DNA of 64,000 nucleotides from Dicyema japonicum (GCA_011109175.1 RDEW01000026.1:823695-887694), one strand, 5' to 3'; counted from the stretch's first letter, positions 4,722 through 52,250 are shown. Numbers and translations: made by a program. Notes: generated from the letters alone by a model not told the origin.

Positions 4722-6453
4722 TTATTTGTTAGTAGGGAAAACTAGGTTTAATTTGTCATTTTTAAAATTTTTATTAACTAAGTAAAACACCGACGACAGA
4801 AAGACAAAACTGGAGAAAAAAATTACACAGAAAATTTTGAGCAACTAAATATTAATATTAAAAACCTTGTTTAAATTATTTTTGCTTCTGTTGAACTCAG
4901 TTGCAGATGTAGTTTTTGATATATTTATAAAATTCAAATTTTCTTCAATTTTATTAAACTCAGTTGTAGAGGTAGTTTTTGATATGTTTATAAAATTCAA
5001 ATTTTCTTCAATTTTATTAAACTCATTTGTAGAGGTAGTTTTTAATAATAATAATAAGAGGTAGTTTTTGATATGTTTATAAAATTCAAATTTTCTTCAA
5101 TTTTATTAAACTCAGTTGTAGAGGTAGTTTTTGATATGTTTATAAAATTCAAATTTTCTTCAATTTTATCTAACTCAGTTGCAGATGTAGTCTTTGATAT
5201 GTTTATAAAATTCAAATTTTCTTCAATTTTATTAAACTCAGTTGCAGATGTAGTCTTTGATATGTTTATAAAATTCAAATTTTCTTCAATTTTATTAAAC
5301 TCAGTTGTAGAGGTAGTCTTTGATATGTTTATAAATTCAAATTTTCTTCACTTTTATCTAACTCAGTTGCAGATGTAGTCTTTGATATGTTAAAAATATC
5401 TAATTGAAAATCGAAACCGCGTTCCAGACGCTTTAATGTTTCCGGGTGATCTTTAATAAATGACAAAGAACCAAACTTGACTCACATAATCCGAAATGAC
5501 CTTTACTGGAAACATCTCTCCATTGACCGGTACAAAGGTCCATAACTGCTGCATAAGGAGTTCCAGAGTTCAGCACCCTTTGTTTAACATCATCAGATTC
5601 CCAATTATGATAACCCCCTCCAACGGAGGCATTAATAAATACGCGTTCGGATATAATTCCTGAGTTTATATTTATATAAAATACCACGAACAAAATCATT
5701 CTCTAATTGACTTTCAATCAAGAAAAGGGAAGCATAGTTTCTTTTGCATTCATTGATAATTTCGTGAATATTCTTGTATTGCATTAATATCATATAGATG
5801 CGGCCATGGTAGTAAAAATATTGTACATATTTTCTCGTACCAATATATCCTGTTTCAATGTATTGATGTAACCCTTCATTCTGGGTTGTGTGGCCAAAAT
5901 TATCCACATTGAAAGTCTTGGCTCCAGGAATAATGGTATCTGCAACTAAAAAATATATCAAACTCTTTTCGCACGCAACAAACATCTCCATAAGGTAATC
6001 TCGAACTCGCATTTCTCTAGAACAGGGATCTACAAAAATTCCGTATGTTTTATCGGGATTATATCCGGTTGCACGTCTATAATAAGGCTTGATGATAATT
6101 AAAACTCCTAACCATAGAATATCCATTAAATAAAACATATTTTCCATTCATTATTCGTCCGTCTATCCAGAAACATTTGTTTAGTAGAGCTATTTTAATA
6201 ATTCTAAAACCATACAAGATAAAAACTCAAGTTCAGCTTGGTTATTAATGATCGCCATATAATAGTCATCATCACATGAAAGCCTTATTCGTCCTTGATC
6301 AGATGCAACGTCAGGAATTAAATAGCCATGACCCTCAAAGTTCGCCATTATTTTATTTATTTCTATTAAAAGTATCAAAATTGATTTACCATAATAATAC
6401 CAGTCATTACCAGAACAGTCAAAAAAGAGAATATAAAAGTATAACATTCTCAT
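4722..6453 (-). pseudogene. Double C-type-lectin-like domain type-I membrane protein gene, copy A (stalk disrupted as assembled)
   Basis: Removing GT-AG introns of 27, 26, 25, 18, 25 and 26 nt gives an open frame: signal-like MRMLYFYILFFDCSG; CTLD1 (C..AIINNQAELEFL..FWIDG..VACEK); CTLD2 (CKRNYASLFLIESQLENDFV..YHNWES..GQWRDV..GLCES); a 21-aa repeat stalk; then, after a 21-nt intron, TM LLKIFCVIFFSSFVFLSSVFYLV and a basic tail. Lesions: 1-nt deletion near 5333 and 26-nt insertion at 5044-5069. Confidence 0.65.
4894..5391. repeat. 63-bp tandem repeat, about 7.5 units, encoding INISKTTS(A/T)TE(F/L)(N/D)KIEENLNF on the minus strand
   Basis: AACTCA(G/T)TTG recurs at 4894, 4957, 5020, 5109, 5172, 5235, 5298 and 5360: spacing 63, except +26 (insertion) and -1 (deletion). 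Confidence 0.95.
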
Positions 6454-7139
6454 TGTGAAGCGAAATCTGATTTATAAATGAAATCTATTTTCAGGAATTT
6501 AAAAAATGTGTTCATGAATTCACTTGTTTGTTAACATAATTAGATTGACTGGTCTTTTGATTGACAGGACGGGTCTCTTGATTATTAAAATTATTCTGAG
6601 ACGATTGGGAAGTGAACCAGTTAAGCATCAGTTAAATAAGCGATGATCAATGAATGATCTAAATTTTACTAAGATAGCTAATGTTGTGATCGGTTTCGCC
6701 AAAAGAATCAAATCTCATAAGAATTCTTTCAGAAATTAAAGTGCGATCAGCAATAAATGTGCAAATCCTTCAGAAATAAGTGTGCGATTTTTGCGTTGCT
6801 GCAAATCTAGGTTTCTGAGCACATCTCAGAAGGAGCGAAGTGGAGAAGGTGGAGATTTATGCTGTCCAACAATTTTCCTTGGTTTTAGTGGCCTTTTTCT
6901 CGACTTTTTATGAGACTAAATGACGTGAGACTTTTATACAATGTCCAATGGTTAATAAGAATCCCAAAATTTGAATTTGATAATTATAAATTTAATAATC
7001 AATTTTGTTCTACTTTTTTCAAAAAACATACTGTATTTTTTGCTTTTTTGTAAAAATTTCGCCATTTTCCGGTCGCCATTTTTAATAAAGGTGATCATTG
7101 ATTAAGCAAAATATATCATTCATAAAATTTATTCAAGGA

Positions 7140-8039: not shown

Positions 8040-9360
8040 ATATGAGGCGATTTGAATGCCAAACACCCTCTCTGGATGCCAAACAAAAGTAACACAATCT
8101 TATGGTCCAGACGGAATTCCCAAGATCCTAATCCTGCTGAAAAACCTAGGCAATGAGGGAATCGGTACCCTGACCAAAATCTACAACTGGTCGATTAATT
8201 ATAACTCAATCCCAAGGATATGGAAACTTGCAAACATTCGCCCAGAATTGAAGCCAGGAAAACCGAAAGAAGACCCAGCTTCCTTCAGGCCTATTTCTCT
8301 CTTGCTCCAAAAATTATGGAAAAGCTCACCCTCGCAAAGAACTCCCGATAAACCGTTCCAGCATGGCTTCATGAAGGATCGGTCCACAACTAGTTTCCTC
8401 ACATCCTTGATTAACTTTATTCGCTTCGGATTTGTGTGCAAGCCAAGACACCAGAAAACTGTGTTATGCTCACTAGATGTCTACAAAGCTTTCGACTCTG
8501 TGCCGAGGAAAAACATAACATGGAAAATCTACCAATCAGATATCCCTGAAAACCTCAAACACTGGCTGAAACTTCCTTAGCGGACGGAGAGGTAGAGTGT
8601 GCATTGGAAACATTCATTCTGTCTCTTGTTTATTCCCAAATGGAGTACCCCAGGGTTCGCCGCTATCACCATTCCTATTCAACCTATTTATGGCTGACAT
8701 TCCGAAAAAATACACATATGGATCGACTACTCGAGTGGTTTAGTGAAAATCGGATGTCAATCAATACCGAAAAATCTGCTACAACTCTCTCAGACAAAAG
8801 ATTGTCGAACAGGACAATAGAAGTTACTGTAGAGGAAGAGCATTGCTGTTCAGGAAATGGCAAAAAATATTGGGTCTAACTTTCGATACGCACATGAACT
8901 TTTCGAGACATGTCACCAACGTGCTGAACAAATGTGAAAAGAAAATCAACCTTCTGAAATGCCTAACAGGTCTATGGAAAATTAGACATCACCCTATACT
9001 TAAAACGCTCTACTCACAGTACATCGAACCATGCACTACATATGCGTGTACATCATGGGAACCACCGACCTCTTATACGAACACTCAGAAATCTCCGCAA
9101 CCCAGAAAAGGGTTTTCAAGCTAACGGAGAGATGGTACACAGGAGAAAACATTAAATCACCGACGCCCATTGAGAAACTAATCGAAAAAAACAAAAATGG
9201 AAATAAGTGTCAAAAAGAAATGCTCGCCCAGAACGAACTTGTGTAGGCTCAAGGAATCAAAACCGAGCAAAGATGAGAGCCTTGATCCAATTCGTCGGGA
9301 TCACTTAGTTTTTTCGGTTTAACAGTGGTCTTGGAATTAATTTTTATTAAAAAAAATTAA
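8040..9360 (+). mobile_element. 5'-truncated, degenerate Jockey/I-like LINE RT with 3' tail
   Basis: RT motifs RPISLL, QHGFMKDRSTTS, LDVYKAFDSV and GVPQGSPLSPFLFNLFMADIP; internal deletions and frameshifts; stem-loop and AT-rich tail at 9296-9360. Confidence 0.85.
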
Positions 9361-9763: not shown

Positions 9764-10759
9764 CAAAACAACACGAGAACAGTTATTTTCAAAATTGTAT
9801 CTTTTTTAAATTAATTAAATTTAATTAAAAAAATACTAAAAACAAATTCACTCTTTAATGGACATTCTGGTAAACATGGCTCTTCTACGGTGTGAACATT
9901 ACTTCTCTCTACCTACATATGTACTTAAACTGGATGAAGCGGGAAGATGTCCTCTGTTTCTTTTGACTTCCCTGAGTTGACAGGAAATCACTTATTAAAA
10001 GTCCTGAATTTCTACGATGTCCGTCTCCTACTCCAAAGTTGACCGATCTATGGGCTGCGTCCTACTTAATAGCCGCTAGTCTCCTATAGGTTAGTAAGGC
10101 CAGGGTTATTAACTAACTAGAAACTTGTAGTGCTTACTTAACTAGTATGGGAACCTTAGAAGCAAAAAATTCGTCCCACTAGATTAAATCCTCTTTCAGG
10201 TTATTAAATTGTTCCAAAGACCAAGAGTAAAATCAAACTAACTAATCCCGTGACCTTGACGCGTTCCAGTAGAACCCTCATGCACAGTGATCCTCAGGAC
10301 ATTGTCGGGGAAGCTGTGGTCGATGCTAGAACTCCTCGTCAGGAGTCGAAAGTCTGCCGTTGGGATGAATAGATGGATCCTTTGTCGGCCAAACATTGAA
10401 CTTCTCATGAGTAAGATGGATTAGATGACGTTACTAGGGGAAGGATGAGAAATTCTCAATCAAGTAACCACATACAACGCGGCTTATTGGTGATATGAAG
10501 TAAATAAGGAAGCCCAATTCTTTAAATTATTCACGTTTGATTGTACAATTTTTATTTTCATATAACAAACTGAATGTTGTCAAATTTTTAAATTTATTAA
10601 AATAAATGAAATCACAAATTAAAACGAACCACAACACAAAAAATGATAAACAACTGAGAGAGAACTATAATTTCCCAGTTGTTGGGAGACGGTCCCTATC
10701 TTAGAAGATCCCTAGGATTCAACATATTAAAATTGTAAAAAGACAGTGAAATACAAATA

Positions 10760-12468
10760 CTAGTATCCATATTTATCATTAAGTGGATTATGTCCATCCC
10801 CGATTCATCTACAATAACCACAAGACATACTAGAAGGGGGAACCCACATTGCATAGTCAACATCCTTTGAATACGTGGGATATTCCTCAACAAACATTGA
10901 ATCACACAAACGAGGTTTCTTTCTTTTACAAATATTCTCATCATGTCCTTTATTAGGCACAGTATCCTCGGCAATAGAACTGATCACATTCCTCAAGGTT
11001 TTATCCAATTCTCCCTCTTTATTCTCACTTTCATCAGTCTTGGGCACATTAGTATCCAACACACCATTAGTAGTCTTAATATGGGAAAGTCTGTCAGTCT
11101 GAGTGATTGGTGGGGTACCAACAGGTCGTGCAATGTTGGCTAGTGATATAATACGTCTATGTTGGGCACGTAGATTAATCATATCAGCCTTGAACTTTAC
11201 TCTCATCCTCTTGTCGATTCCCCCCGCCTTGATCATGCTCATATAACCATCCAAGTCATCCCAACCAACAGATTCAGCATTTTCTACATATTATTAACTC
11301 CAAACCAGCTCTCTCCAACTCCCACTGTCTCTTTTCAATCTGTCCCTCAATCTCACCCAGTTGTCTCACCTACAATAACACTAACCACTACCAGACTCTC
11401 ATAGTTTTCACTCACCACAGGTTCCTTCCCTACTCTGTGCATTCTCTGAAGTCTCTTTCTCTCTATAGTCCCCGTTCTGTCATAAAATGTGTCATCATCA
11501 CTCTCATAGTAGTCATTGGCTGCCCAATCACGCTTTACTGACACGGATTCTACCATTAATAACCCAATTACTATGCTCTCCCAACAACCCACGTGCGTTG
11601 AGTAGTCTACAAGCCTCAATTGCACATTTAGTTATAGCTTCCTTCCGTTTTTCCTCATCCACCACCTCTGCTGTGACTGTTTGGTCATCCAACATCATTC
11701 TTGGATTTAAATAACCGCTCACTTTAGTTGACACGTGTACAGACCATATCCGTTGTCAGTTACCTTAAAATTGGGCATTTCCTCCCCAATTCTATCAAAG
11801 TACACCCTCAATGTCTTCCTCGGGTCTGACAAGAACACAGACTCATCCACAGCATCGTCATCCTCTGCTGCGTCCTCTCCTAACAGTTAACTCCACTAAT
11901 AACCAAATCCCCACGAACATGAAGTAGGATTATTAACTGACTCTTCCTTAGGAGACGCTTGCTTCTCCATTTCTGCTCTTCTATTATGAACAGCCCTCAT
12001 GTGCTTTATTTCGGTTATTGAGTGCATGTCCTCAGCCTCTTCAACAGGTCCCTGTAATATATAATGTATTTGTACTTGCAATATGAAAAGCCGTGTGCTT
12101 GTACCAAACTTTGCTAAATGCCCGACATTAAAGGGGGTATATTCTCTCACTGGGAGTCTCTCCTTGTTTATAAAGGTCCCATGAGTGCTGTCGAGGTCAT
12201 AAATGTGCCACCCAGCAGGAATCTCTGACCCGCGTGAAAATTGTAGAACGGCATGGTATCTGGATACTGAAGGGTTTTCCATTTTAACGCTACAAACGTC
12301 AGATCGACCAATTATCAGTTTGGAGATACCCTTTAGATTGACCTTCTCGACCAATGCTCCATTTCTGATGACTTCTATATAATAGTCCCGATCACAGACA
12401 CAAGTCCAATTAGGATCCTTATATACATATTTTAATTCATTGCTCCCATGTTCATTAGCAACCAACAT
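10760..12468 (-). CDS. SLC4A1AP: Kanadaptin-like FHA-domain nuclear protein, multi-exon
   Basis: FHA domain (IIGRSDVC..SVSRYHAVLQF..YDLDSTHGTFINK), YESDDDTFYDRTG motif, and C-terminal DYAMWVPPSNESGDGHNPLNDKYGY* after removing a 22-nt intron. Confidence 0.88.
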
Positions 12469-15240: not shown

Positions 15241-15779
15241 GGCCGAGAGCATGTTTTAGTGTACAACTAATAAGTATACCGTAGGATTTACTACACTAGT
15301 CCGCCTGGAGGTGTTTCGAATGGGGGTTGCATGGCTACTCAGCATCATGAGTTCTCTAGCTGCTCTTGGTACATGCAGATTGATAAATCAAAAAGAATCC
15401 TAATTTTTGTTGGAGTTCAAGTGGGAGAATACCTTAACCCATGAAGTTAGGTGAACGATAATGTTCCACTTACCCATAGGACCCCTTAAAATCAATTTTA
15501 TAAGATTTAAAAAAGATGACTTTTTTACATAAAGATGTCGTTTCGCTAAAATCTCGTGATGTTTATCGATGAACTTATCCAAAACCTGAAAAAATTAATG
15601 GAGGCCATTTTGAATGGACAAGCAATTCAGAAGCACCTCTCGAATCCCCAATATTAGGACTTTTTAAAAGTGATGGAATTGAACCCTTCCAAACGCAAAA
15701 TAGAGAACCACTTGTCGTTGTTTACAAACAATATGCGCACAACACTCAATCATGCCTCTCATTCTTGAGAATTTATAAC

Positions 15780-16745
15780 CAGGATCAGGTGATCCGTATG
15801 AAACCTATAGATCAATAATTTAGTGTGTTCTGACATAATTTTTTTGTGCTATTTATTGTCAATAAAATAAAAATTAAGATGTTATCAAGGATTTATTAGT
15901 TAATTACCCATAAATTATAATTATTGATTAGTAGGGGGAACTAAGTTTAATATCCCTCATACATTATGTCAATCTTAAATTTTTATAAACTGAGTAAAAT
16001 ACCAACGACAGAACGACTAAACTGGAAAAAAAATTCCACAAAAATTTTGACCACCTAAATATTAATATTAAAAACCTTTTTAAATTATTTTTACTTCTGC
16101 TGAGCTCAGTAACAGATGTAGACTTTGATATATTTAAAATATCTGATTTAAAATAAAGAATGTCTTCCAGCATCCTGACTACTATCTCCTGATCTTTAAT
16201 AATTGACAAAGAAACTAGACTCACATAATCCGAAATGAACGGCATGTGAAATGGAAAATATCTCCCCATAGACCGCTACAAAGGTCAATGACTGCTACAT
16301 AAGGGGTTTCAGAGTTTAGCACCTTACTTCTATTCTCGTTAGATTCCCAATTATGATATTCCATTCAAACGGGAACTTTAATAAATCCGTTTTCGGATAT
16401 AATTCCTGAGTTTTATATTTATAGAAATTACAGGAATAATGGTATCTGCAACTAAAAAATATATCAAATTCTTTTCGCACGCAACAAACATCTCCATATG
16501 GTAATCTCGAACTCGCATTTCTCTAGAACAGGGATCTACAAAATTCCGTATGTTTTATCGGGATTATATCGGTTGCACGTCTATAATAAGGCTTAATGAT
16601 AATTAAAACTCCTAACCATAGCAGATCCATTAAATAAAACATATTCACCATTTAATATTCGTCCGTCTATCCAGAAACATTTGTTTAGTAGAGCTATTTT
16701 AATAATTCTAAAACCACACAAGATAAAAAACTCTATAATATATTT
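15780..16745 (-). pseudogene. C-type-lectin-like gene, copy B (5'-truncated, internal deletion, single stalk unit)
   Basis: High nucleotide similarity to 4590-6230 including the 3' flank; most of exon 5 (about 5660-5930 of copy A) is missing; a single NISKSTSVTELSRSKNNL unit precedes the TM exon; 1-nt frameshifts. Confidence 0.75.
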
Positions 16746-17032: not shown

Positions 17033-19560
17033 TCAGGACAACGAGGGCAATCCCTTCGCATCGACTGTTTTCCCGCATCGGCATCGGTGCTCCTTGCAAA
17101 CGTCTAGTCCCAGCCTTTGTCCGATTCCAATTCTCAAAGAATCGTCGTCCAAAAAGGTCCCGATGTTTGGGCAAGGTATTGCACCAAGCCATGCTCCACT
17201 CCCTCTACTTGAAGCTGACACCAAACAAGCCAGACGATGTTGATTTGCTTCTTTTTTAAGGTCTTCCAAAATTTTGGAGCAGACAATGTTATCCCAATTA
17301 CTTTGCTTTGTTGTGTCTTCGGGGATTTTGAGTCCGGACCCGTTCCATTTCTGACAAGCTTCGTCAAATGACTCATTCCAGCGAAGTCCAATAGTGTTAT
17401 GAAGGACTTGCCGTGTCAAATGGCTGCAGCTTGAGAGAGACGATAGGTATGCCGGGTACGCAACCTCCAGCGCCGATCTCATTCCGACACCCCCAAATCC
17501 AGAGGGAAGCTTACATTGTTTCCAACCAAGTTCGTCGAAGCGGACGTTAATTATTGACTCGACTGTTTGCTTGAGAGATTTGTCTATCGAAAGTAGACTG
17601 TCGTATTGTTCGTAGCAGGGTGAACATTGGAGTAGTTATAAAAGCTTGGGTAGTCCGATGTTGTTTCTCATCAGGAAGAAGGATGTGAGAGAGTCGAGAC
17701 ATGACAATCTTTTAGCAAGGCGTGATAGTTCTTTATTTTTGGAAAGTAGATCTTGAGTTCTTTTCGCTGAGTGGACATCCGAGGAAATATAATTTATCAA
17801 CTGGCACAGTCGGGATCCCAGGAAGCAGTTCGTTAAAAGACTCCTTGATAGAGAGAAAGTCGGTGTTTGGGTATGAGACATTAATTAGCTCTGATTTGTT
17901 AATATTGATGTCCAATTCCAAGTGTTTTAAAACGGGTAACGCTTGAAGTAATGAATTGTATGTTTCTTTGAATGATCCTCTAATTGTCGCATCGTCGAAG
18001 TACCAGAGATTTAGCTGTGCATCAATTGACTCACAACACCATCAATTGTCAGGGCAAATAAGAGAGGTCCGAGCGGATCTCCTTGTTGGACACCCATTTT
18101 TGATTTAATAATTTCACTTTCAAAAACCAGAGACGTATCTTCCCCATAGGATAAATTGACAAGAGGGAAAAGCTTTGGAGCCCTCTTCCAACACGTTTTC
18201 ATAATTTTATCTCTTCTGAGAGAATTGAAGGCATTCGTTATGTCCAACTTGATTCCAATGCATTCATTTGTAATATTTTTCTGTGTGAAGAAACGCCTTG
18301 CTGCATGAACCGCAGCCTCACATCCGTTCTGGATACTAACACCCATTTGTTTAGGAAAGAACTCCTCTCCAAGTTGTCGGCTCACCAGGGTCGATGCTAC
18401 TTTTGCTGCAAGTCTTCTAAAATAGTTCCCGACCGCAATGGGGCGGATTCCTCCGTTGGGTTTTTTGAAAGCAAGTAGCCTTGCGGAGAAGAGCAATTCT
18501 CTGGCATATTTTGGGATGTCGCCATTAACCATTTTTCTGATTAGGTCCGTAATTGATTTGACAAGACAGCGTCCAGCTTCCGAGGTGTAAGTGGACGTAA
18601 GGTCCTTAATATGGCCAGGACGTAACCCTTCCAAGCCTCTACCGCTGCTAGCGGCGAAGGAAGTTATTCCGCGGCGCACTTCGGATTCTGTAATGATGAT
18701 CTCTGAATTCCTTCAGGATTCAAAAACTTTTCATAGTCAGTCGGTGCATCTGGTGCTTTAGTATTAAGGTATTTAGGACCTCTGGGGTACAAGACAATAC
18801 TGTGTCATCGGACGTGATAACCCGTAAGGCTGCCCGCACGTCGCCCTCCAGAAGTTTCCGGTTTACTCTCTCCTTTAGTTTGTTGGAAGCATCTTTGATG
18901 AATGCTCCTCTGGTTTCTACCTCATTGACATTAAGTGGATGTTCAAGTATTGCGTGTATGACAGCTAAAATTCATTATGTTTCAGTTTCCCGGATAAGTT
19001 GAGTCGGGAGTTTGTTTCTTTATTATTGTCCTCAGATTCCTTTGTAGGTATTCCGAGTGCGACAGGTGCAAAGCATATAAGTTTTAGCCAGGATTCCCAA
19101 CTGTCAGAGGATAGTGCGTGATCAATGGCATCTGAAAGACACGTTGCTGCGGCAATTCGTACTCCTTTAGGGATTTTTACTGGGATCTTCATGGCTTTCC
19201 TGAGGTTCGAGATCTTCAAGAGAGTATGGTCTGTATGTGGCAGTGTAAAGTTTGGCTGAGTTATTTTTTCCCGCCTGTGGGCCTCCATTCAAATACAAGA
19301 GGGGCACAGCCAACTCGACAGCGTCTCGGCGCAAGCTTTACTATTTTTATGCAGCTCAGATGGACGAATGATTCACATTGCGTGCATTTAATCCCATATT
19401 TCCTGATATTCGATTGTCCACATAAAAAACATACCTGATTTGTCCGTACTGGCTTTATTCCTCGTACTTTGTCTTCTTTTCGTTCTTTATTTTCCATGAG
19501 ATTTTTGTTGATCACACCACTTAATAAACGTGAACTTTCGAATTTTTTCTTTCCTATTTA
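17033..19560 (-). mobile_element. CRE-clade (restriction-like endonuclease) non-LTR retrotransposon, frameshifted and 3'-truncated
   Basis: N-terminal PHD-like finger (CFLC..CTQCESFVHLSC); RT motifs RPIAVGNYFRRLAAK, KLDITNAFN, GVQQGDPLGPLLF, WYFDD; C-terminal CRCGK zinc knuckle. Confidence 0.85.
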
Positions 19561-26860: not shown

Positions 26861-27074
26861 GAGTGCTTTTTAATAGTAATAATAATTCCCTAAAATCAGA
26901 GGTATCCTCAAAACAGAGGTTTTTACCTCGATAATTAAGCAAAATGAACATTATTTTTAAGTCAACCAGAAAATTGCAATTTTCATTTTAAAAATTTCAA
27001 AAAAAAGTAATTGCAAAAAATTGCATTATAGAAAAATAAACAAAATTATTTTTTGTAATACAACACGTTGCTGG

Positions 27075-27808
27075 CTGACGAATGAAAGAAAATACCATGA
27101 ACAAAATTATTCTCTGCTTCACTTTCAATCAATAAAAGGGAAGCAGAGTTTTCTATGCATTCTTGGATAATTTTAGAGATATCCTTATATTCCATTATCT
27201 GTATATAGATGAAGCCATTGTAGTAATAATATTGTTTAAATCTTATTATACCTACAGAACATGTGCCATCTTCTGGAAGTAATTTTTTCTTAGGGGTTAT
27301 ATGATTAAAATTATTTCTAAGTTCAGAAAAAATGCTATCTGAAACTAAAATATATATCTAACCTCTTTCGCAAACACCTAACATATACACATCGGGATGT
27401 TGAACTCTTATTTCTTCATAACAGGGATCTACATAGTAATTGTATTTATTATAACGATCATTTGTAATTCCGGAATAAGGCTTGATGATGATAAAAAATC
27501 CTAACCATAGAAAATCCATTAAATAAAATATATTTACCATTTGATATTTTTCCGTCTATCCAAAAATTTATTATTATTATAGCTACTTAATAACCATACA
27601 AGATAAAAACTCAAGTTCAGAACGGCTATTAATGATCACCAGAGAGAGTTCAATAATGCGGATAGTATTGTTGATCAAATTCAAAGTCAGTGATGAAATA
27701 GCCATGACCTTCAAAGTTCGCCTTTATTTCACCTCGTACTATAAAAGTGTCAGCATCTATTTATATTTACCAGAAGAGTCAAAAAAAAATATAGAATAAC
27801 ATTGTCAT
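27075..27808 (-). pseudogene. C-type-lectin-like gene, copy C (more diverged 5' half, 3'-truncated)
   Basis: Same exon-intron pattern as copy A (FWIDG; VDPC..GVCER; YYYNGFIY..QECIENSASLLLIESEAENNFVH); frameshifts in the first exons; upstream 27810-28760 is homologous to 6460-6970. Confidence 0.75.
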
Positions 27809-27942
27809 CGTGAAGCGAAATCTGATTTATAAATGAAATCTATTTTTTCCTGGAATTTAAAAAATGAGTTCATGAATTCACTTAGTTTGTTAACATAAAA
27901 AGATTGACAGGTCTTAGATTGACAGGACAGGTATCTTGACTT

Positions 27943-28248
27943 AATAATAATAACAGCCTTTTCACGAGAGCCATAATATAGCTCCGCATAGGCAGGACAC
28001 ACACTTTATTTAAGTAAAGAACAGTTAACTAATCGTAGAACCAAGGAATGATCTTCACTTCTTTTTTTCTTTTTCTTGTGTGTGGGTCCTTTCTAGACAA
28101 TCCAGTTCCTCAGTGAGTATCCACTGATGACGGCGTCACTCGTAAACCCTTTTAGCATCGTAGATGCGTGGAACCTTCCACAAGGTGAACAGCAGCGAGA
28201 ATCGAACCCATAACCTAAGTCACTTTAGCCCGACACCTAACCACTATC
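27943..28248 (-). mobile_element. tRNA-derived SINE, copy 2, inserted upstream of lectin copy C
   Basis: TSD TCTTGACTT at 27934-27942 and 28249-28257; the homologous site of copy A (about 6575) is empty. Confidence 0.9.
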
Positions 28249-29417: not shown

Positions 29418-29585
29418 TTGACGAGTGAAGGCGTCATCAGTGAACATGATATGCGGAACCGGATGTTCTAAGAAAAGACCCACCCCAACAAAAAGAAAAA
29501 CGAATTGAAATGCATTCCTTGGTTTACTTTTATCGATTAGTTATGATAAATGTTCTTTGCTTTAAACAAAGTGTGTGTCCTGCCT
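29418..29585 (+). mobile_element. Diverged SINE-core relative
   Basis: TTGACGAGTGA.GGCGTCATCAGTG...TTCCTTGGTT...AAAGTGTGTGTCCTGCCT is collinear with the SINE body at 44924-45090. Confidence 0.7.
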
Positions 29586-29597
29586 GGAGGAGCGATA

Positions 29598-30300
29598 GCA
29601 AATCAACATCGTCTGGCTTGTTTGGTGTCAGCTTCAAGTGGAGGGAGTGGAGCATGGCTTGGTGCAATACTTTGCCCAAACCTCGGGACCTTTTTGGACG
29701 ACGATTCTTTGAGGATTGGAATCGGACAAAGGCTGGGACTAAACGTTTGCCAGGAGCACCGATGCCGATGCGGGAAAACAGTTGATGCGAAGGGACTGCA
29801 CCCGCTATCCTGCAGAAGAAGCGCCGGAAGAGGACCACGTCATGCTGCTCTGAACGATGTGATCGTCAGAGCTCTGAAGGCTACAGGCTTCCCAGCACAG
29901 CTTGAACCAGTGGGTCTTGATCGAGGATTTGGAAAGAGACCTGACGGGATGACCCGGGACGCAACTTGTGTAGACACGTTCTCAAGCACGAATATTTTCA
30001 AATCGGTTCAGACACCTGGAGCAGCTGCTTCGACTGCGGAGAACCTAAAAATCAAGAAATATTCTTGCCTCGGGGATCACTACCGATTTACTCCTGTTGC
30101 GACCGAATCATCGGGATCCGTTGGTCCAATGACAGCTGAGTTCTTGCGAGAACTCAAAGGATTGTTGCCAGAAAGAAAAGGGATCAACGAGAAGGGTTAG
30201 GGCTAAGACAAAAGATTTGAATGGCCACACTCCGAGGGAACTCGATCGCAATCCACGCAGCAGGCTTCCTCAACTGACATTTGTTTAATTGTTAAAAAAT
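29598..30300 (+). mobile_element. CRE-like element 3' fragment (RLE domain and tail)
   Basis: CRCGKTVDAKGLHPLSC..RHAALNDVI..KRPDG..DATCVDT; near-identical to 17033-17240 (inverted) and 52262-52690. Confidence 0.85.
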
Positions 30301-41399: not shown

Positions 41400-44300
41400 A
41401 TTTTATTAACCCCGGATACACCGAGAAAGAAGTTAAAGTAAACAACTAATTAAGTGTATCCAGTTTCCACTTCTACAGAGTCCATCAGGAATTAGCATAA
41501 AGGGTAAGACGTCCATTACATGAAGTTGTGGAAACCCCTCCAGTGAAGTGGAAGAGCAAATGATCCTTTTTCATGCCGGCCTGGCACTGGGCGTCACCTA
41601 GACAGGTGGATCACATGACGCCACTCTATTAGAAGGAGAGAGGAGGAACAGACAAGCAAGCAGAAAAATTAAACCAATTAACCACGCAGCACCATATGGC
41701 GCCACGCGGCCTTAATCATTTATTTTTGATGACCCCGGTTTTTTTTAAGCACTCCCGGGAAATCAAAAATTAATTAGATTAATTAAGTTCCCCTTGTGCC
41801 ACGTCCAGTATCCTCCCACACATCCTCTTCCATGTTCCCCTGTTCCGGGCCATTGCTCGTAGTGAGTCAAGATCTTCACCATTTCGTAGAGTTTTGTTTA
41901 TTCGGATTAGGTCATCATTTAGTACTGAAGGCAACGTCACTCTAGGCCTGCCACGGAATGATCCCTTCAGTTGTGCGAAATAGTTCTCCATTGCAATGTT
42001 TGGTGGAGTCAACATATCCATTCGTAAGATGTGACCAAAAAGTCTCCACCTAGCCTTGAGAATCTCCTCTGATAATGGCCTTAAGCCACATCTTTTGTAC
42101 AGTTCTGAATTTGATATCTTTTTCGGGAAATGTATTCTCAAGATGTTTCTTAGTTGATTTCTATGAAATTGATCCAGATTGTCCATTTCCCGTTTCGTAA
42201 TCCCCCATGTCCCACAGTTGTATGTCAGGACTGGAACCACGAATGTTTTATACAATTTTAGCTTTGTATTGGTAGTTATGCTCTTCTTAGTACGCCAGAT
42301 AGTTAAGAATTTTTTATATGCAGCAGTGGAAAGGATTTTTCTGTGGGTCACATCTTCTGAGTCTCCAAGTAGTGAACCAACTTTTTTATGCCTTCTCCAT
42401 GATTCATCGTAAGTGCGTACAACTCGTACAAGTTTTGTATATTCAGTTTTGTCTTGGTTGACAACTAAGAACCATTTAGAAAAGGCATTTGGTAAGTTCT
42501 TGAGAACGTGATGAAGAATTTCAACATCTTCAGAAACAAAGTCAAGATCGTCTGCATATATTAACTCGGTTATTTTGTTGTTCTCAATTAAAGGCCTGAA
42601 ATCTCTCAGTGCAGTTTCCATGTAGATTATGAATAGAACTGGTGACAAAGAGTCTCCTTGCGGAATTCCACGTGAAGTATAAAAGAATTCTGAAGTAGTT
42701 TTTCCGAGTTTGGTTGCTAGTTGCGTATTCTGCAGTAGTTTTTGTATAATTTTGACATCATCCGTTGTTAGGAAGCTTGTGAGTACTTCAAGAAGTTTGC
42801 CTCTATGAACCGAGTCAAACGCTCTGGACATGTCTATTCCGAGAACATCTATGCACTTTTTATATTTTTGGCATAGAGCACTTGCCCATCTGTGTGTCCA
42901 AATGACATCGGCAGTGGATCTGCCTGACCGGAAACCACTTTGTCCTGGTGACAGAAAATACTCCACCTTGTCTTTGATTCTTTCCAATGTAATAATTGAC
43001 AAGATTTTTCGCAGCGTAGTTAGTAGGATGATTGGTCTTAGGTTGGAAAGGGGCCCTTTGGGTTTTCCAGGTTTTTGCAGTGGAATTCACCAACCCTTGC
43101 CAATGTCTAACGTAGTGTTTTCTTCAAATATTTTGTTGAGTATATTGGTAATGATTTTTACCAACTTCACTGGGGCATACTTAATATGTTCGGCTGGGAT
43201 ATTATCTGGTCCTGCCGATCTGTCATTTTTCAATTTTTTAATTGCATCCAGTGTTTCTTGTGTGTTTATTGGGATGTCCAAACCATGCTTGACTTGTGCA
43301 CCAAATTTATAGCCTATTTCGTTGTCCCAGTTGAGCATATGAAAGTAATAAGCAGATATAGTAGCTGCTTTGTCCTTTTCATCGATAATTATTCTGCCAA
43401 GGATGTCATTGATTATTATGGGGCACTCTTTTTCTTATTAATTGAATAGCTTTGAACATTTTCACTCCATCTTTATATTTTTCAATGTCTTCAATTTGTT
43501 TTTCTATTTCTTTAGCCGTTAAGGATTTCTGAGTTTGCTTGATTTTTAATAATGTTCGGTTTCGTTGTTGCCAAAGTTCCTTGGCCTTTTCTGGAGACCT
43601 TGAGTTTTCTATCTTCAATTCAAGGCTTTCTGGTTTTCTGATAGGACGCAGATATCATGATTGTAAAATTTACGGGGTTTTGTAATACTTCCCAACACAT
43701 CACATGCTGTACCTTTTATCGACTTTGTCCCAAATAATATGAACAGGTTTAGTTTCGTCGATATCATTAAGTTCAAGATTTAGTTGATACGCATATTTCT
43801 GTTGAGTTGACTTGTCATGTAATAATTGGATATCATATTGCTCCTGCTTTTTATTGGAAGGTGTTTTCATTTGGTTATGGACTTTGTATAGTCCAATGCG
43901 AGTAACCACAATTTTATGTTCACTATTTGTCTCTAATCCTCCATATGACCTGGAGTCTACGAGGAGATGTTTGTGACCTCGTCTGCATAGTCTGTAGTCA
44001 ATTTGATTATATATTTTTATGTAATTTCCTTGAAAATCCTTCCTAGTTCCAGTCCACGTCGTCTTGTGTCTCGCTGGGTGACGAAATGCCGTATTGCACA
44101 AAAACAGATCCAAGGAAGTGCAAAAGTGGATTATTGCCATTCCGGGCGTGTTTCGCCGATTTCTTCCATGAGATCCGATACAAGTTTCTCCAGATCTGGC
44201 TTTCCCTGCTTTGGCATTCCAGTCCCCGGCAATTAAGCAAAAATATGAAGAACTGAGAGTGTTGTAAACCCTTATGAGGGCGGAGTAGAATTCGTCTAGT

Positions 44301-44745
44301 TCTTCTGGATTGGCAGATGCCCTGATTCCAGTCGGGGCGTATATGTTGATGATTGTCACTGTAGAGTTTGGTTTGCTTCCCCACCGGATTTGCAGTACCG
44401 CAATCCTGTCTGTAACGACCCACATCCGAGATATACGACTATACAATGTGTGATGAATAGCAAATCCAAGTCCATAGTGACGACACGTTGTTGGAAGGGT
44501 AATCAAATGATAATTTCCCACCCGCATGCATGTGTTGTCAGTTATTTTTGTTTTCTGTAGGCAGCATACTGATACCTTATAGTGATCCAAATCACGTGAC
44601 AGCTGAAGCTTCTTGTATGTTGGATTGAGTCCTCTTACATTCAGGGTACCCACAGAAAAAGGGCAGTTAGATATTAGACGTGAGAAAGACATATGTGCTA
44701 TAGAGGGACGTCACCACCTCAACCAAAAAAACCCGGTTTGTGGCA
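41400..44745 (-). mobile_element. Near full-length RTE-clade LINE (APE-RT), a few frameshifts
   Basis: APE ORF 43700-44692 (TLNVRGL, IYAPT, GDWNAK, QIDY); RT ORF 41779-43002 (QSGFRSGRST, DMSRAFDSV, GIPQGDSLSP, YADD); about 380-bp 3'UTR and A-rich tail. Confidence 0.93.
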
Positions 44746-46269: not shown

Positions 46270-47835
46270 ATTATTTTTAATAGTATATGTTGGACACACA
46301 ACCACTCTGTAAAGTCCAAACCTATAGAAGAACCAAAAATAGAAGATTCTACAGATAACAAGTCACTATTGATCACAGTTCACTGTACTATGAGTCTGAT
46401 AAAAATTGCGAATATCCTAAATTTTTACTATCAATATGGATTTTTGAGGATGAACCACAAAAGACCGGGCTCCTTCCGATTAGATTTCCGCGACAATAAC
46501 CACATGGTCGAATATATGAAGGCCATTAATGAGACCTGTCCCTTTGGACCTGACAACCACCACTTCAGAACGCTCATCAAAACCTTGTGAGATTGTTCTA
46601 AGGAACCTTCCTTTCTGGGTGAGTAAGAATGACCTCCTTGCCTACCTTCAGGAGATGGCACCCTCAACTTCGATGGTAACCCGAATGTCAAGAGGATCAC
46701 AGCCTATGGCAAAGTCCTCAGTTAGTAGTAATGCGGAGGCCACATCGTTGATACGTTGTGGATTTTACATTGGATCAAACAAGATCGAATGTGAGTGGAT
46801 GAAGAGGCCCCCTCCCATCTGCTACAACTGTGAACGCATCGGCCACATCGCGGCACAGTGTAAGGAAAAGAAGAGATGCATCAAGTGTGGAGGGGAGCAC
46901 GATCTTCTTATGTGTGAATATCCATCGAACGTGAGGACCAAGTGTATCAATTGTGAAGGAGCAGGACACAATGCCCGCCATAGAGGATGTCCGGCAATGA
47001 GAGAAGCATCGAAGAAGATAATTTCCATACAAACAGTGTCTAGAAAAGAAGGAATCAAGCCAATTCATGAAATGACGTGGACCAATACTTCACATACTCC
47101 TGATTGGCCGGTGGAGATGAGCGCTAAAAGGAAAAATTTGCAGAGAAAGTCAGAAGTTTGCGAGATGGTCAAACAGACGGAAGAGATTATGAAAACTGAT
47201 AGCTCTCACATTCGTGATGGATCGGTGGATCTGGGCGCCAAACGTAAACATGAACAGAGCAAAGCAGGAATCCCCGAGTCGGTATCTCGGGAGCTGAATG
47301 GTATTGTCTCTCGTCTGAACAATTTATGCAAAATGCTGAAAGTGGATTTTTGGAGTCTGGTGGACCTGGCTGTGGAGAGCGCAGGCCACCAACCAAACCG
47401 TTGAAAAGTAAATTGAAAGTAGTGATGGTGAATGCCCGCTCCCTGGTGAAAAGGCATGATGAACTAGCGCTACTTGTGAGGATTGCCAAGGTGGATGTCT
47501 TGGTAGTCAACGAGGAAAATCAAACAAGGAAAGAATATAGTATGGAAGGTATAACTCGGTGGGCATTCCATGGAAAGATGGAGCAGTAGCTGGAACTTCA
47601 ATCTTTTTTCGAAACGGTTTGCAAACACGGAATGATTGCAATGTAATGGCCGATGAGTCGGAATTTGTGTCCGTGGTTATTCTATGTGGAGGGAAATGGA
47701 TAAGCGTAGGAGGGCTATATTCTAAAGACTTGGCCCGATCTTCTGCGAAATTGTCCAATTTCGAAACTAACCCGATGTCGATTTCGGTAGGAGACCTCAA
47801 CGCTAAGAATACGAGCTATGGATGCTGCAAAAATA
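46270..47835 (+). mobile_element. Jockey/I/R1-like LINE 5' part: ORF1 with three CCHC knuckles and APE start
   Basis: CYNCERIGHIAAQC, CIKCGGEHDLLMC, CINCEGAGHNARHRGC; then VNARSL..VNE and GDLNAK. Confidence 0.85.
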
Positions 47836-47879
47836 ATAACAATTTACTGCAACTCAGGATAATTTTAGAAGGTTTTTTT

Positions 47880-50200
47880 ATTAACTAAAGTATCAGATCT
47901 CTGGTTATCGACATTCTCGTGTACACAACCGACGATAGTTCCCGCTCTTCTTTATGTGCTTTATCAATCAGCAATCCTCAGACCATTTCCCCTGATAACA
48001 AGTGCTTCTTCATGTTTCCTCAAAATTTTGTCAGAAAACCGACAGATATTGCCATTCAGGTCGTTCTCCTTGATATTTAGATGTTGGATGTCTCAATGGA
48101 GGATATTCAGTCGACCGTTGGGAAGAAAGTCTTTGTGAGTCCAATCATAATTATTAAACCCTCAAATGTCGTCTCCAGGAGCATTTCAAATGCCAAGTCC
48201 ACTAATTGGCTATGAGAACAAAAATAAGTTGTTTGACTTTGAGCATAACGCCCATCTGTTCACCTCATCAAGTTGTGCTTGTTATTACTTTAGGAAAATC
48301 AACCACGTGGGAGGATATGACCTATTCTACTGATATTGTGCTACAGAGAGACTTTAATATTGCCTTCACTTCATCGAGGAGTGCAAAGTATTTTTGGGGG
48401 GTAAATGGTAGATTCTGGATTATGATGTCCCCCGAAAGGGACGAGACCACGATTAGTAATAAACTGAATATTCTGTACAAGAAGACTCTGTCGGTTGATT
48501 ATATGGCCATGTTCTACGTTTTTGCTGCCCGGGTGTCTCCCACTTCCTTTCACCTCATTTGTGCTTGTGTGACTGACGCCGTCGACCAATCGTTTCTTTA
48601 CTTTGACAAGAGTGGTTATCAGCAGGTCGTTTCCACTAAACACTATAACGTACATTTTATGTTACTCTAAGATTCCTGGATATCAGCAGATATTCGTTTC
48701 GGTCTCTGGTGTTATATGATAAAACCACTGGAAGCTGCAAGATCTATTTCGACCCCTTTTTCGAAAATTTGCTGGGAGTTTACGTGGAGTTCTTTGAAAG
48801 CTCAGAAGGGACCCCCCAAATAACATTCCTTAACGAAGACAAATCCCGAATATTTACAAAGTCTTTCAATTACCCATCTGATGCACTCGTAAGACTATTT
48901 TATTATCATTTAGCCAAATACTAACAAATCTGTCCATAATTCGACTGAAGGTTGACTCTGGGGTTATTTTAGCTGATTCTCCGTTGAATGGATGCTATTC
49001 TACACGTGATGTTAAGATTATCAGTAATTCCTTGATATATTTCAGCTGAAACTATTTATGAGGAGAATCTGTCCGACGACGTTGAAGTGACTGCATTAAA
49101 TGATACGCTTGTTGACATTGCATGTGTTCAAAGTGGAGATCAAAGTAATGTCGATAATGTAAGCAGTAGGCGATTCCTTTGATCGTCCTGTTGACTTTGT
49201 AAGTTTTGATGATAAAGTTTTACCTGGTATTATGGATAACTGACGTCTAGACGATAATATTGCTGAAAGTTTGGTGGCAACTGATCCTGGATCACCAGTC
49301 GATGTAACACACACAGTAATCCACCAGGATGACATACAGGTGACTCAATCACTCTTTACTGGAGTGGAGGAATCGACTAAGGAAGGTTTGTGATATTTCA
49401 ATTGCTAGTTGAGGTTGTAATTGAGGACATGAAAGCTGAGGACCTAATTGGTGAACAGTCTGTGACTCAGGAGACTGATGAAGGTTTGATGGTAAGTGAC
49501 CTTAATAGTTGAGGTCTATATTGAAGAGTCTGTCATTCAAAGAGTGGAGGACACCAATGAGGGGGGTTTGATGATTACTAATAATAATTAGGTGAGGATG
49601 ATGACCAGTCTCCTCATAGTAATTCCATGGATGAACATTTTGTGATTGAACATTTTTCATCAAGAGAGGACGGTTTGGTCGTTTAAACAATTCCTAGTGG
49701 CTGAGACTCTCAGGGATTCAAACAGTCCAGTTGACCCAGCACGTGAGGACGACCAGCTTATAGTGTCTGGGGTGTCAATCCCACTAATCTCAACTGAAGA
49801 TAACCAGAATTCTGATCGGAATCAGCAAAATACTGCACCAATGACTCAAATGTCTGTTATTAGCGAGGGTTAGTCAATGTGAACGATTGTAGTCGAGATT
49901 ATCGTTGGTGATTCAGAAGATGGTGATAATTCTAATCAAAGTAAGTTTATCATTTTGTTATAATTATTGGCTGTTGTGAATTTTGTTGATAATTTTCAGA
50001 TGGTTTGGTAGATATTGCTGTTTATGTAAATTGCCGTATTCTGAATATATTTGGCTTACTACTCCCTGTCTTTTGCATTTTGTACGCATACTTGAGTACA
50101 CTGAATATTTTGAACCTTTCTTTGATGTTTATTACTTTGATTCATAACATTTCTTATTTTAGATTCTGCATGAATGATGTACTTAGACGTTTGGTAGTTT
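47880..50200 (+). pseudogene. Ankyrin-like ZU5-UPA fragment with acidic micro-exon tail
   Basis: Spliced FMFPQNFVRK.TDIAIQ|..KVFVSPIIIIKP, TWEDMTYST..AFTSSRSAKYFW and LYKKTLSVDYMAMFYVFA..LICACVTD match ankyrin ZU5B/UPA (FPEGAL..GLQ..FSPIVTVEP; WEDITGTT..SFTTNVSARFW; LYRELICVPYMAKFVVFA..LRCFCMTD). About three frameshifts; no ANK repeats; 21-26 nt introns retained. Confidence 0.75.
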
Positions 50201-50204
50201 GACT

Positions 50205-52250
50205 TAATGAATTTAATATTCATAGTCAGAGTACGAAGCGACACATTCTCAAAGGGGAGACTACTCCTTGCAGATTTGGCTAGCGAAGTTGGAGTTGAGG
50301 TCTTGACGTCCTAACCATTTCTCATACAACGGAGCTGACATGTTGGGATTGGCTCTAGTGTCTCCACAGCTCCTGGATTATGTGGACGGACCAGCGTTGC
50401 TTTGGGACATTGGGAGTGATCATATTCCGCAGGAAATATCTATAAACTTAGAATTAAACATTGCAGAAAATATTTTCCTATACTACGATACTTGGTCGAT
50501 AGACTGGGTACATTATCGTCATTATTTGTCTGAGACCTTACTATCGAAGACTATCTCTTGTTCTACACCTAATGAGCTGGACGTTTTCGACAGGTACTAT
50601 CCAGCACTATGCTGACGTATCTTCAATTATATGGAAGGAAGGTTTACTCGAAGAGCTTTCTGAAGAGCAAAGATTTTTGCCCACCTATAATACGGGATCT
50701 TATTCGCGAGAGGAATACTCTGAAGGCGAAGCACAGACGATGTATTGATATGTGGGACAGGAAAATCTTGAAATACAAAATTGATGTGATCCAAACAATG
50801 CTACAAGAAGCTTGGAAAGTAAACGCCGAAAATAAATTGAAGAGTGCAGAAAACCCTTGTTTCTGGAAAATGTACAGGAGGCTAACGAATGGGAGTTTAA
50901 AAGCGAAAAACATTAAGCTAGCCGATCAAAATGAAGGACAATCCCATTGGAAAAAGTTCCTTCGGTATTCCGAAATCAACTAGAGAATATACAGGGTGTT
51001 GATCCTATTAGTGTTATAAATGAAAAATTTTCAGAGGAGTTGCCTAATTTCATGGATTACTCTATGGAAGATCTGGGTAGTTTGACAGAAAAAGTCTCAA
51101 TGGCAGAAGTTAGAATAGCAATTCGTGAATACAAGAACAAGGCCCCAGGATTTGATGGCATTCCTATGATTATGTTCAAAGAAGGTTCTGATGAACTATT
51201 GTCTGTTCTACGAGAGATACATGAGTCGAGTTTCAGTGTCGGACACGTGCCTCCTTTATGGAAACGATCTATTGTTAAGATGATCCTCAAGCCAGTAAAA
51301 GCAAGGAAGGATCCCCTCAGTTATAGGCCGATAAGTCTTATATGTTCTACATCAAAGATTATGGAACGTATTGTATTTAAGAGACGGTATATAGAGGGGA
51401 GCAACTTTCTACGACCTAATCAATTTGGTTTCCGTCCGGGAAGATCATGTGGAGATTGTATCCACTCACTAAACTACGAAATTATAAATACACTGGAGAA
51501 GAAAAGCCAGTTGAGCCTTATTTGTCTCGACATATCAAAGGCATTCGACAGTGTATGGCACGAGGCGTTATTTCGTCAACTAGTTCGCTCTAAAATAACC
51601 AAAGAAATGTTCCTATGGTTGAAAGACTATCTAACCGGGAGGATATCCCACGTGGTAGTTGGTGGAAGTTATTCGGATGGAATATCATTTAAAAGAGGAG
51701 TGCCACAGGGATCTATTTTTAGCTCTTTGCTATTTAACATATTTATGGAAGATTTTCCGTCTCCGCAGAACGTCAGAACCAAACTAATGATTTACGCGGA
51801 CGACATTTTAATCCTCGACGGAAAAATCCAGTTATTTGAGGATAAGCAGGCCGGGTAGACATCAGCCCTACACTCTCTGTATACCAAGAGTTTCGTCATT
51901 GAAATATTTGGGGATTTCAGTCGATGGAAGAGGATCATACATGAAGGACATCGAAGGGCGAAGAAAAAAGGCTTTGCAGACACTGTACTGCACTAAAAGA
52001 CTGAAGCTAGACGTTGATTCCATGCTCTTCATCTTCCGGAATGTGATTCTTCCCAGACTGATCTACGGAAGCGAGGGATAGTTCTACACCCCTCGAGAGA
52101 AAGGATTCTCGTCCGACTGGAGAAAACACGGCGGGCGGCGATAAAACTAGCCCTCGTAAGAAATTACATTAAGCCTGACGGAGGAAGAGAACAAACTTGT
52201 CAGGCCGATCAAGGAGGACATCCTACCGAAATTGTAAAATATTATTTAAT
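50205..52250 (+). mobile_element. 5'-truncated Jockey/I-like LINE ORF2 (APE end and RT)
   Basis: FNIH..KGRLLL..GSDH; YRPISL, QFGFRPGRSC, LDISKAFDSVWH, GVPQGS, YADD. Confidence 0.88.

Follow-up and report, generated by a model that had tools for sequence, protein, structure and literature searches.

A probable C-type-lectin-like domain, and possibly a second, in a micro-intron gene of Dicyema japonicum that most likely stems from a stalked type-I glycoprotein

Introduction

In this study, we describe a gene of eight exons, hereafter copy A, and two diverged relatives, copies B and C, in a window of 64,000 nucleotides from Dicyema japonicum (GCA_011109175.1, RDEW01000026.1:823695-887694), the window being the whole stretch of DNA analysed. 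Judged from its sequence, the most likely origin of copy A is a type-I glycoprotein with a stalk, in which one C-type-lectin-like domain (CTLD) is probable and a second is possible. The fuller reading that we prefer, and hold to be reasonably probable, is that copy A belongs to a family of animal type-I glycoproteins that is specific to its lineage, in a genome of micro-introns which is probably that of a dicyemid, that the second module of copy A is a CTLD, and that the gene as it stands is truncated or a young pseudogene. The intact form of this family would hold two domains off the parasite cell surface on a glycosylated stalk and may serve as an adhesion or recognition molecule. Copy A as assembled would yield a secreted, anchorless protein of 314 amino acids, or else represent a very young pseudogene.

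Dicyemids are animals whose body has about 30 cells and whose genome has only about 5,000 genes, and they live attached to the kidney epithelium of cephalopods. To our knowledge, almost nothing is known about the molecules at this contact. Among animals, C-type-lectin-like receptors that do not bind sugar often belong to multigene families that are clustered, evolve fast and include numerous pseudogenes, and the CLEC proteins of nematodes often contain two CTLDs. The published genome of Dicyema japonicum is reported to have a GC content of 36.7%, to consist to 49% of repeats rich in LINE ORF2, and to have the shortest introns among the spiralians compared (PMC6736024). The window has about 37% GC, ORFs for LINE reverse transcriptase and endonuclease, and introns of 21-26 nt. 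The word lectin is absent from the published genome paper (PMC6736024), and in the searchable literature Dicyema and C-type lectin never occur together in one paper.

Results

Layout of copy A

According to the first-pass annotation of the window, the ORF track breaks this gene into unrelated pieces. This was borne out, since a bacterial-style ORF list divides the minus strand of 4722-6453 into eight short pieces, which are spread over all three frames. The joined frame starts at the ATG at 6453, and taking out seven GT...AG segments leaves eight exons (4722..6453, minus strand). This model draws on the ORF pieces, the intron and exon coordinates, the joined frame and a chance control. Coordinates are those of the window throughout, and all features of the three copies lie on the minus strand.

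Exon 1 (6411..6453) contains the ATG and the signal-peptide-like MRMLYFYILFFDCS, with a core of 9 aa and a mean hydropathy of 2.2. In the joined frame, exon 2 (6216..6362) encodes the N-terminal half of domain 1 up to LSCDDDYYMAIINNQAELEFLS, exon 3 (6113..6189) reads LLNKCFWIDGRIMNGKYVLFNGYSM and includes the WIGL-like FWIDG, and exon 4 (5964..6087) supplies the C-terminal part of domain 1, closing with VDPCSREMRVRDYLMEMFVACEK. The linker and the N-terminal half of CTLD 2, YFYYHGRIYMILMQYKNIHEIINECKRNYASLFLIESQLENDFV, are encoded by exon 5 (5685..5939; assigned by Pfam, PDB and Atlas searches), and the C-terminal half, which runs to YHNWESDDVKQRVLNSGTPYAAVMDLCTGQWRDVSSKGHFGLCES, by exon 6 (5477..5659; PDB profile and Atlas). 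Exon 7 (4866..5450) holds a juxta-domain segment and the stalk with its eight 63-nt units. Exon 8 (4722..4844) encodes the TM-like LLKIFCVIFFSSFVFLSSVFYLV, a hydrophobic segment of 23 aa (hydropathy 2.32 over a 19-aa window), followed by the 17-aa tail NKNFKNDKLNLVFPTNK with four lysines and by the stop codon. The order is accordingly a signal-peptide-like start, module 1 (exons 2-4), a linker of 45 aa, module 2 (exons 5-6) and the stalk; the two modules bear cysteines, measure about 105 aa each and are spaced by the 45 aa of the linker.

Micro-introns and the chance control

Six micro-introns had been proposed to join the pieces. That copy A is a micro-intron gene was supported; the count was not, as we find seven GT-AG introns of 21-48 nt. 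Intron 1 (6363..6410) has 48 nt and is in frame in copy A. Intron 2 (6190..6215; 26 nt, phase 1) and intron 3 (6088..6112; 25 nt, phase 0, with 22 of 25 nt identical in copy C) lie within module 1. Intron 4 (5940..5963; 24 nt) is again in frame in copy A, and intron 5 (5660..5684; 25 nt, phase 1) divides CTLD 2. Intron 6 (5451..5476) has 26 nt, and intron 7 (4845..4865), the shortest with 21 nt, contains an in-frame TAG.

With up to six GT-AG excisions of 21-48 nt, 341 codons can be reached from the ATG of copy A. A Markov-1 control of 200 simulations reached 48 codons on average and 266 at most, and in the same control the opposite strand reached at most 59. The model of copy A is thus well beyond chance, and the gene is real.

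The introns are also visible by comparison. Introns 1-5 of copy A recur at the same places in copy C, five positions in common. At intron 1, the same GT and AG enclose 32 nt in copy C versus 48 nt in copy A, a difference of 16 nt and hence no multiple of three; intron 2 has shrunk to 17 nt in copy C from the 26 nt of copy A, a difference of 9 nt. The indels between the two copies in exons 3-5 amount to 0, 6 and 12 nt. The counterpart of intron 4 in copy C contains an in-frame TAG and must therefore be spliced there. A neighbouring gene, identified by a Pfam FHA match (E 6e-16), can be read from 12468 to about 10700 and gives 545 codons once six GT-AG introns of 22-24 nt are taken out. Taken together with the introns of copy A, this neighbour indicates that micro-introns are the rule in this genome. 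By these marks copy A would be a spliceosomal micro-intron gene, with GT-AG introns of roughly 20-50 nt, positions kept between paralogs, and introns of this kind general in the genome.

As another source of apparent tiny introns we considered a ciliate-type genetic code. It was dismissed, since GT-AG excision clears every stop in exons 1-6, and the animal-type LINE elements in the window also speak against it. With introns of 21-26 bases, a good deal of a genome of this kind escapes ordinary ORF calling.

Copies B and C are pseudogene fragments

Two further diverged copies of the gene had been placed at 15.8 and 27.1 kb. Paralogs do exist, at 16.2-16.7 and 27.1-27.8 kb, but as further genes they do not stand, being partial and broken. 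Copy B (15772..16729) is a pseudogene fragment that lacks exons 1-2 and retains the TM segment. A clean deletion of 240 bp has removed nearly all of its exon 5 and left intron 5 in place; exon 4 bears two deletions of 1 nt, and exon 6 a GGA-to-TGA stop as well as a further frameshift. Its stalk consists of a single unit, versus eight in copy A. Over a patch of 301 bp, copy B is 96% identical to positions 5925-6225 of copy A, between flanks of 75-79% identity, which suggests gene conversion.

Copy C (27071..27947) is likewise a pseudogene fragment and comprises the upstream or promoter region and exons 1-5 only, the sequence homologous to the gene ending at intron 5. Exon 1 is frameshifted at a run of nine T, and a deletion of 8 nt in exon 2 has also cost the copy its Cys1. 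As B and C are both pseudogene fragments, the window holds at most one working gene. We also considered that an insertion might have divided a single gene into B and C; this was rejected, as exons 3-4 and the beginning of exon 5 occur in both. LINE reverse-transcriptase fragments adjoin the copies and lie between them. The dead fragments B and C may go back to duplication and deletion, together with LINE-rich rearrangement and gene conversion in patches.

Conservation between copies A and C is uneven. The 86 nt before the ATG (6454..6539 in copy A) are 97% identical, and within them the 34-mer directly before the ATG is identical in both copies and occurs only these two times in the window. 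Introns 3 and 4 are 88% identical, and the exons 66-79%. Over exons 3-5, dN/dS between A and C is 1.13, a value to be read with copy C being a pseudogene. Exons that outpace promoter and introns would fit diversifying selection; the same pattern would fit equally well with constraint on the tiny introns and decay of the dead copy, and since one partner is a pseudogene the A-C data cannot separate selection from decay. The birth-and-death pattern proposed for the family in the first-pass annotation finds support in the copies, with probable gene conversion and faster divergence of the exons relative to promoter and introns.

Frame breaks in the stalk of copy A

The stalk consists of eight near-identical units of 63 nt (21 aa), NISKTTS[A/T]TEFNKIEENLNFI, each with an N-I-S sequon and a cluster of T and S; eight N-x-S/T sequons are counted over three frames. 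Two breaks interrupt it. Frame break 1, in unit 1 (5329..5335), has T3 in place of T4 at 5333-5335, which leaves this unit with 62 nt and a TAA at 5331-5329, the first stop of the spliced frame after 314 codons. Frame break 2, in unit 6 (5031..5056), is an insertion of 26 nt with a TAA at 5044-5042; it is made up of TAT repeats and a duplicated 13-mer and lacks GT-AG ends on the coding strand. The units therefore give the same amino-acid reading spread over three frames, and only units 6b-8 share a frame with the TM helix and the tail. With the spliced frame ending at 5331-5329, both breaks separate it from the TM-like exon 8. Signal peptide, ectodomain and TM helix, which in a type I membrane receptor lie in one frame, do not do so in the assembled copy A. 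The parts listed by the first-pass annotation (signal peptide, two lectin-like domains, repeat stalk, TM helix and basic tail) are thus present, except that the stalk is not one open frame and the TM helix not in frame. Over 1.8 kb, the reading of the FHA gene contains no frameshift that is left unexplained, from which base quality looks good and the stalk breaks are probably real; still, an assembly error is nowhere more likely than in a tandem array.

The breaks bear on whether copy A is alive at all. The whole locus could be a graveyard in which copy A, too, is a pseudogene and its 314 open codons are recent history. Besides the two breaks, the richness of the region in LINE fragments fits this account, as does the dN/dS of about 1.1 between A and C, which agrees with neutral decay as well as with diversifying selection, and the FHA neighbour without frameshifts makes assembly errors an improbable cause of the breaks. 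Yet the frame of copy A stays open from exon 1 to exon 6 across six intact GT-AG introns, with every motif cysteine kept, and the contrast between 97% identity over the 86 nt upstream and 66-79% in the exons argues for promoter constraint or recent use. Both breaks, moreover, fall in the tandem repeat, the part most prone to assembly error, and a break in the stalk still leaves a secretable two-domain protein. We consider a wholly dead locus unlikely, if an account to be taken seriously.

Copy A might also be an intact anchored receptor, its stalk breaks being assembly errors or the trace of unusual splicing. Break 1 changes the length of a homopolymer, T3 versus T4, the stalk units each retain the same amino-acid reading when taken in their respective frames, and the exon for TM helix and tail is open. 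Frame-restoring GT-AG excisions do exist, but an exhaustive search returned 160 solutions from which to pick, all of which need pieces of 17 nt or of 68/80 nt. These rescuing excisions were rejected as ad hoc, as the 17-nt pieces lie below any intron length seen here and are present in every unit. The 26-nt insertion is neither a homopolymer error nor GT-AG on the coding strand, and the neighbouring FHA gene is without base errors over its 1.8 kb. An intact receptor is in our judgement distinctly unlikely.

Module 2 is very probably a C-type-lectin-like domain

Our preferred reading, a truncated or newly dead member of a glycoprotein family, takes module 2 to be a CTLD. Domain searches were run exon by exon, with the halves of each domain separate. 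Exon 5 matched Pfam Lectin_C (PF00059) over positions 3-41 with an E-value of 0.028 and 15.6 bits, below the gathering score of 22.6 bits; the exact exon 5 scored 12.9 bits. When the exact exons were searched singly against Pfam, exon 6 and all exons of domain 1 were without a Lectin_C match. A Pfam match to COP9_hel_rpt, as weak as that to Lectin_C, was taken as chance.

Against the PDB, the nine best matches of exon 5 were residues 11-54 of the DC-SIGN CRD (E 0.3-0.5). Exon 6 matched residues 98-138 of human mannose-binding protein (1hup) with an E-value of about 1. With a profile of the exon 6 pieces of copies A and B, six of ten matches were the CRD of rat mannose-binding protein A (MBP-A), at residues 72-112 of 115 and with E-values of 0.1-0.3, the match ending at the final Cys-Glu. 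Overall, the PDB E-values range from 0.08 to 1, and no single domain match is significant. In the Atlas, the three best named clusters were Lectin_C both for exon 5 (score 0.87-0.88) and for exon 6 (0.84-0.85), scores of 0.84-0.88 being rated by the tool as leads only.

In domain 2, Cys1 (NEC) and Cys4 (GLCES), which in this fold pair as the core disulfide between the first helix and the last strand, are present in the register given by DC-SIGN and MBP-A, and the W.D...CE end is kept. The Cys2-Cys3 disulfide of canonical long-form domains is not found in domain 2, where the alignment to MBP-A has Ser at Cys3. Many accepted CTLDs also lack the Cys2-Cys3 pair, so that its absence does not exclude a domain from the superfamily. 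No exon of copy A matches the PROSITE PS00615 signature as a regular expression. Domain 2 is very probably a CTLD in view of its sequence, since each half matches the right part of a lectin, in correct register, and three methods agree.

The absence of canonical EPN/QPD motifs, already remarked upon in the first-pass annotation, holds: aligned to MBP-A, domain 2 has DVK at EPN and WRD at WND, and does not show the combination of EPN/QPD and WND at calcium site 2 that marks a true CRD. With DVK for EPN, WRD for WND and no Cys3, classical calcium-mediated sugar binding is not expected of domain 2. By analogy with the non-lectin members of the C-type-lectin-like group, it is more likely to bind protein or another ligand.

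Alternatively, the modules may have a cysteine-bearing fold of their own lineage that shows CTLD-like motifs by chance, an account that could invoke searches of Pfam and PDB without a significant match, the unmatched PROSITE signature and the missing Cys3, along with zero relatives both in a word search of 5.8 billion proteins with the 171-aa ORF of copy A, which sees proteins of 94-300 aa only, and, at E <= 0.001, in a HMMER search of 1.84 billion representatives with a profile built from exons 4-5 of A and C, but which is very improbable given that the two halves of domain 2 independently match corresponding parts of the same family in correct register and that the three methods agreeing on lectins are unrelated. 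No gene call on record corresponds exactly to the 171-aa ORF.

Module 1

The motifs of the gene had been described as following the CTLD pattern. This holds for domain 2 by the matches of both halves, and was not reproduced for domain 1 by HMM or PDB searches: PDB searches with exons 2-4, both singly and in profile form, brought up no relevant match. BLASTP found no similarity between the exons of domain 1 and those of domain 2, and Smith-Waterman alignments of collinear exon pairs of the two domains, assessed with shuffles, were marginal (p 0.09 and 0.08). In the joined frame, domain 1 is without EPN/QPD and WND. It does have both cysteines of the core-disulfide pair, Cys1 in LSC and Cys4 in VACEK, and its motifs occur in the order C...A.I.....E.EFL, FWIDG, DPC, ACE. 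Furthermore, introns 2 and 5 interrupt their respective domains at the same position and in the same phase (1), after E..F(L/V). The motif order and the intron position in common favour domain 1 as a CTLD, and the sequence weakly suggests a degenerate duplicate of domain 2.

Discussion

Copy A would be one member of the family proposed here, and the locus invites a wider, tentative suggestion. It is possible, though we would not put it higher, that dicyemids carry a large, undescribed and fast-evolving family of surface or secreted proteins with double C-type-lectin-like domains, which would form a host interface under diversifying selection. In such a family, exons would outpace promoters and micro-introns, stalks would expand and contract, patches would be swapped by gene conversion, and copies would die fast. 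The locus would then be one snapshot of this turnover, showing a gene that is young or truncated beside two wrecked copies. If true, stalked lectin-like proteins from an expanded family with quick turnover would be concrete candidates in attachment or in recognition of the host. The weight that this one locus can bear is limited, as the anchor of the best copy is out of frame and the other two copies are dead. A role in host recognition or antigenic variation, as put forward in the first-pass annotation, is pure conjecture.

Among known proteins, the two halves of domain 2 match best to the CRDs of DC-SIGN (CD209) and MBP-A, and do so in the correct register, with scores below every threshold. 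Domain 2 resembles them in having Cys1 in the first helix, E..F(L/V), NW, W.D and the final Cys-Glu. It differs from them in DVK for EPN, WRD for WND, the missing Cys3 and a Cys2 displaced by a few residues. The designs differ too: DC-SIGN and MBP-A are type II proteins or collagen-linked oligomers, whereas copy A follows the plan of a type I protein, in which two domains precede a stalk of repeats.

Also comparable are the animal receptors of the C-type-lectin-like group that do not bind sugar, and the nematode CLEC proteins. Copy A is like them in having a probable CTLD without a calcium or sugar site, a likeness that goes no further than the domain pattern. Unlike these receptors and CLEC proteins, copy A has a 21-aa NISKTTS stalk repeat and introns of 21-48 nt, both specific to its lineage.

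Sequence similarity among the lectin-like copies

Copy A, the lectin-like surface gene, and copy B, a broken paralog fragment of it, share 96% identity over a 301-bp patch (positions 5925-6225 and 16431-16729), while the flanks of this patch reach only 75-79%. The profile suggests that a near-intact gene (A) and a pseudogene (B) have recently undergone gene conversion here. A second conserved stretch links copy A to copy C, the other broken fragment. The 86 nt 5' of the start codon (6454-6539 and 27810-27895) are 97% identical, exceeding the 66-79% identity of the exons, and the 34-mer adjoining the ATG does not differ between the two copies. These 86 nt are a candidate for a promoter or 5' UTR element of the family.

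Unit 6 of the copy A stalk, a tandem array of 63-nt units, carries an intron-sized insertion of 26 nt (5031-5056), which is flanked by a duplicated 13-mer and on the opposite (+) strand reads GT...AG (GTAGTTTTTAATAATAATAATAAGAG). It may be a chance match, or it may reflect the process by which short insertions come about here.

Neighbouring genes and retroelements

Retroelement ORFs and fragments, comprising RVT_1, an endonuclease and gag-like ORFs with zinc knuckles, are found at 8056-9124 (+), 17033-18679 (-), 29530-30200, 41779-44692 (-) and 46529-51858 (+). One of them sits immediately upstream of the 5' break in copy B, for which it may be responsible. An intact FHA-domain gene at 10700-12468 (-), which from its C-terminus we take to be kanadaptin-like, encodes 545 codons via six GT-AG introns of 22-24 nt. 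Finally, a DEAD-box-type helicase exon lies at 53840-54532 (-) (Helicase_C match, E 6e-12).
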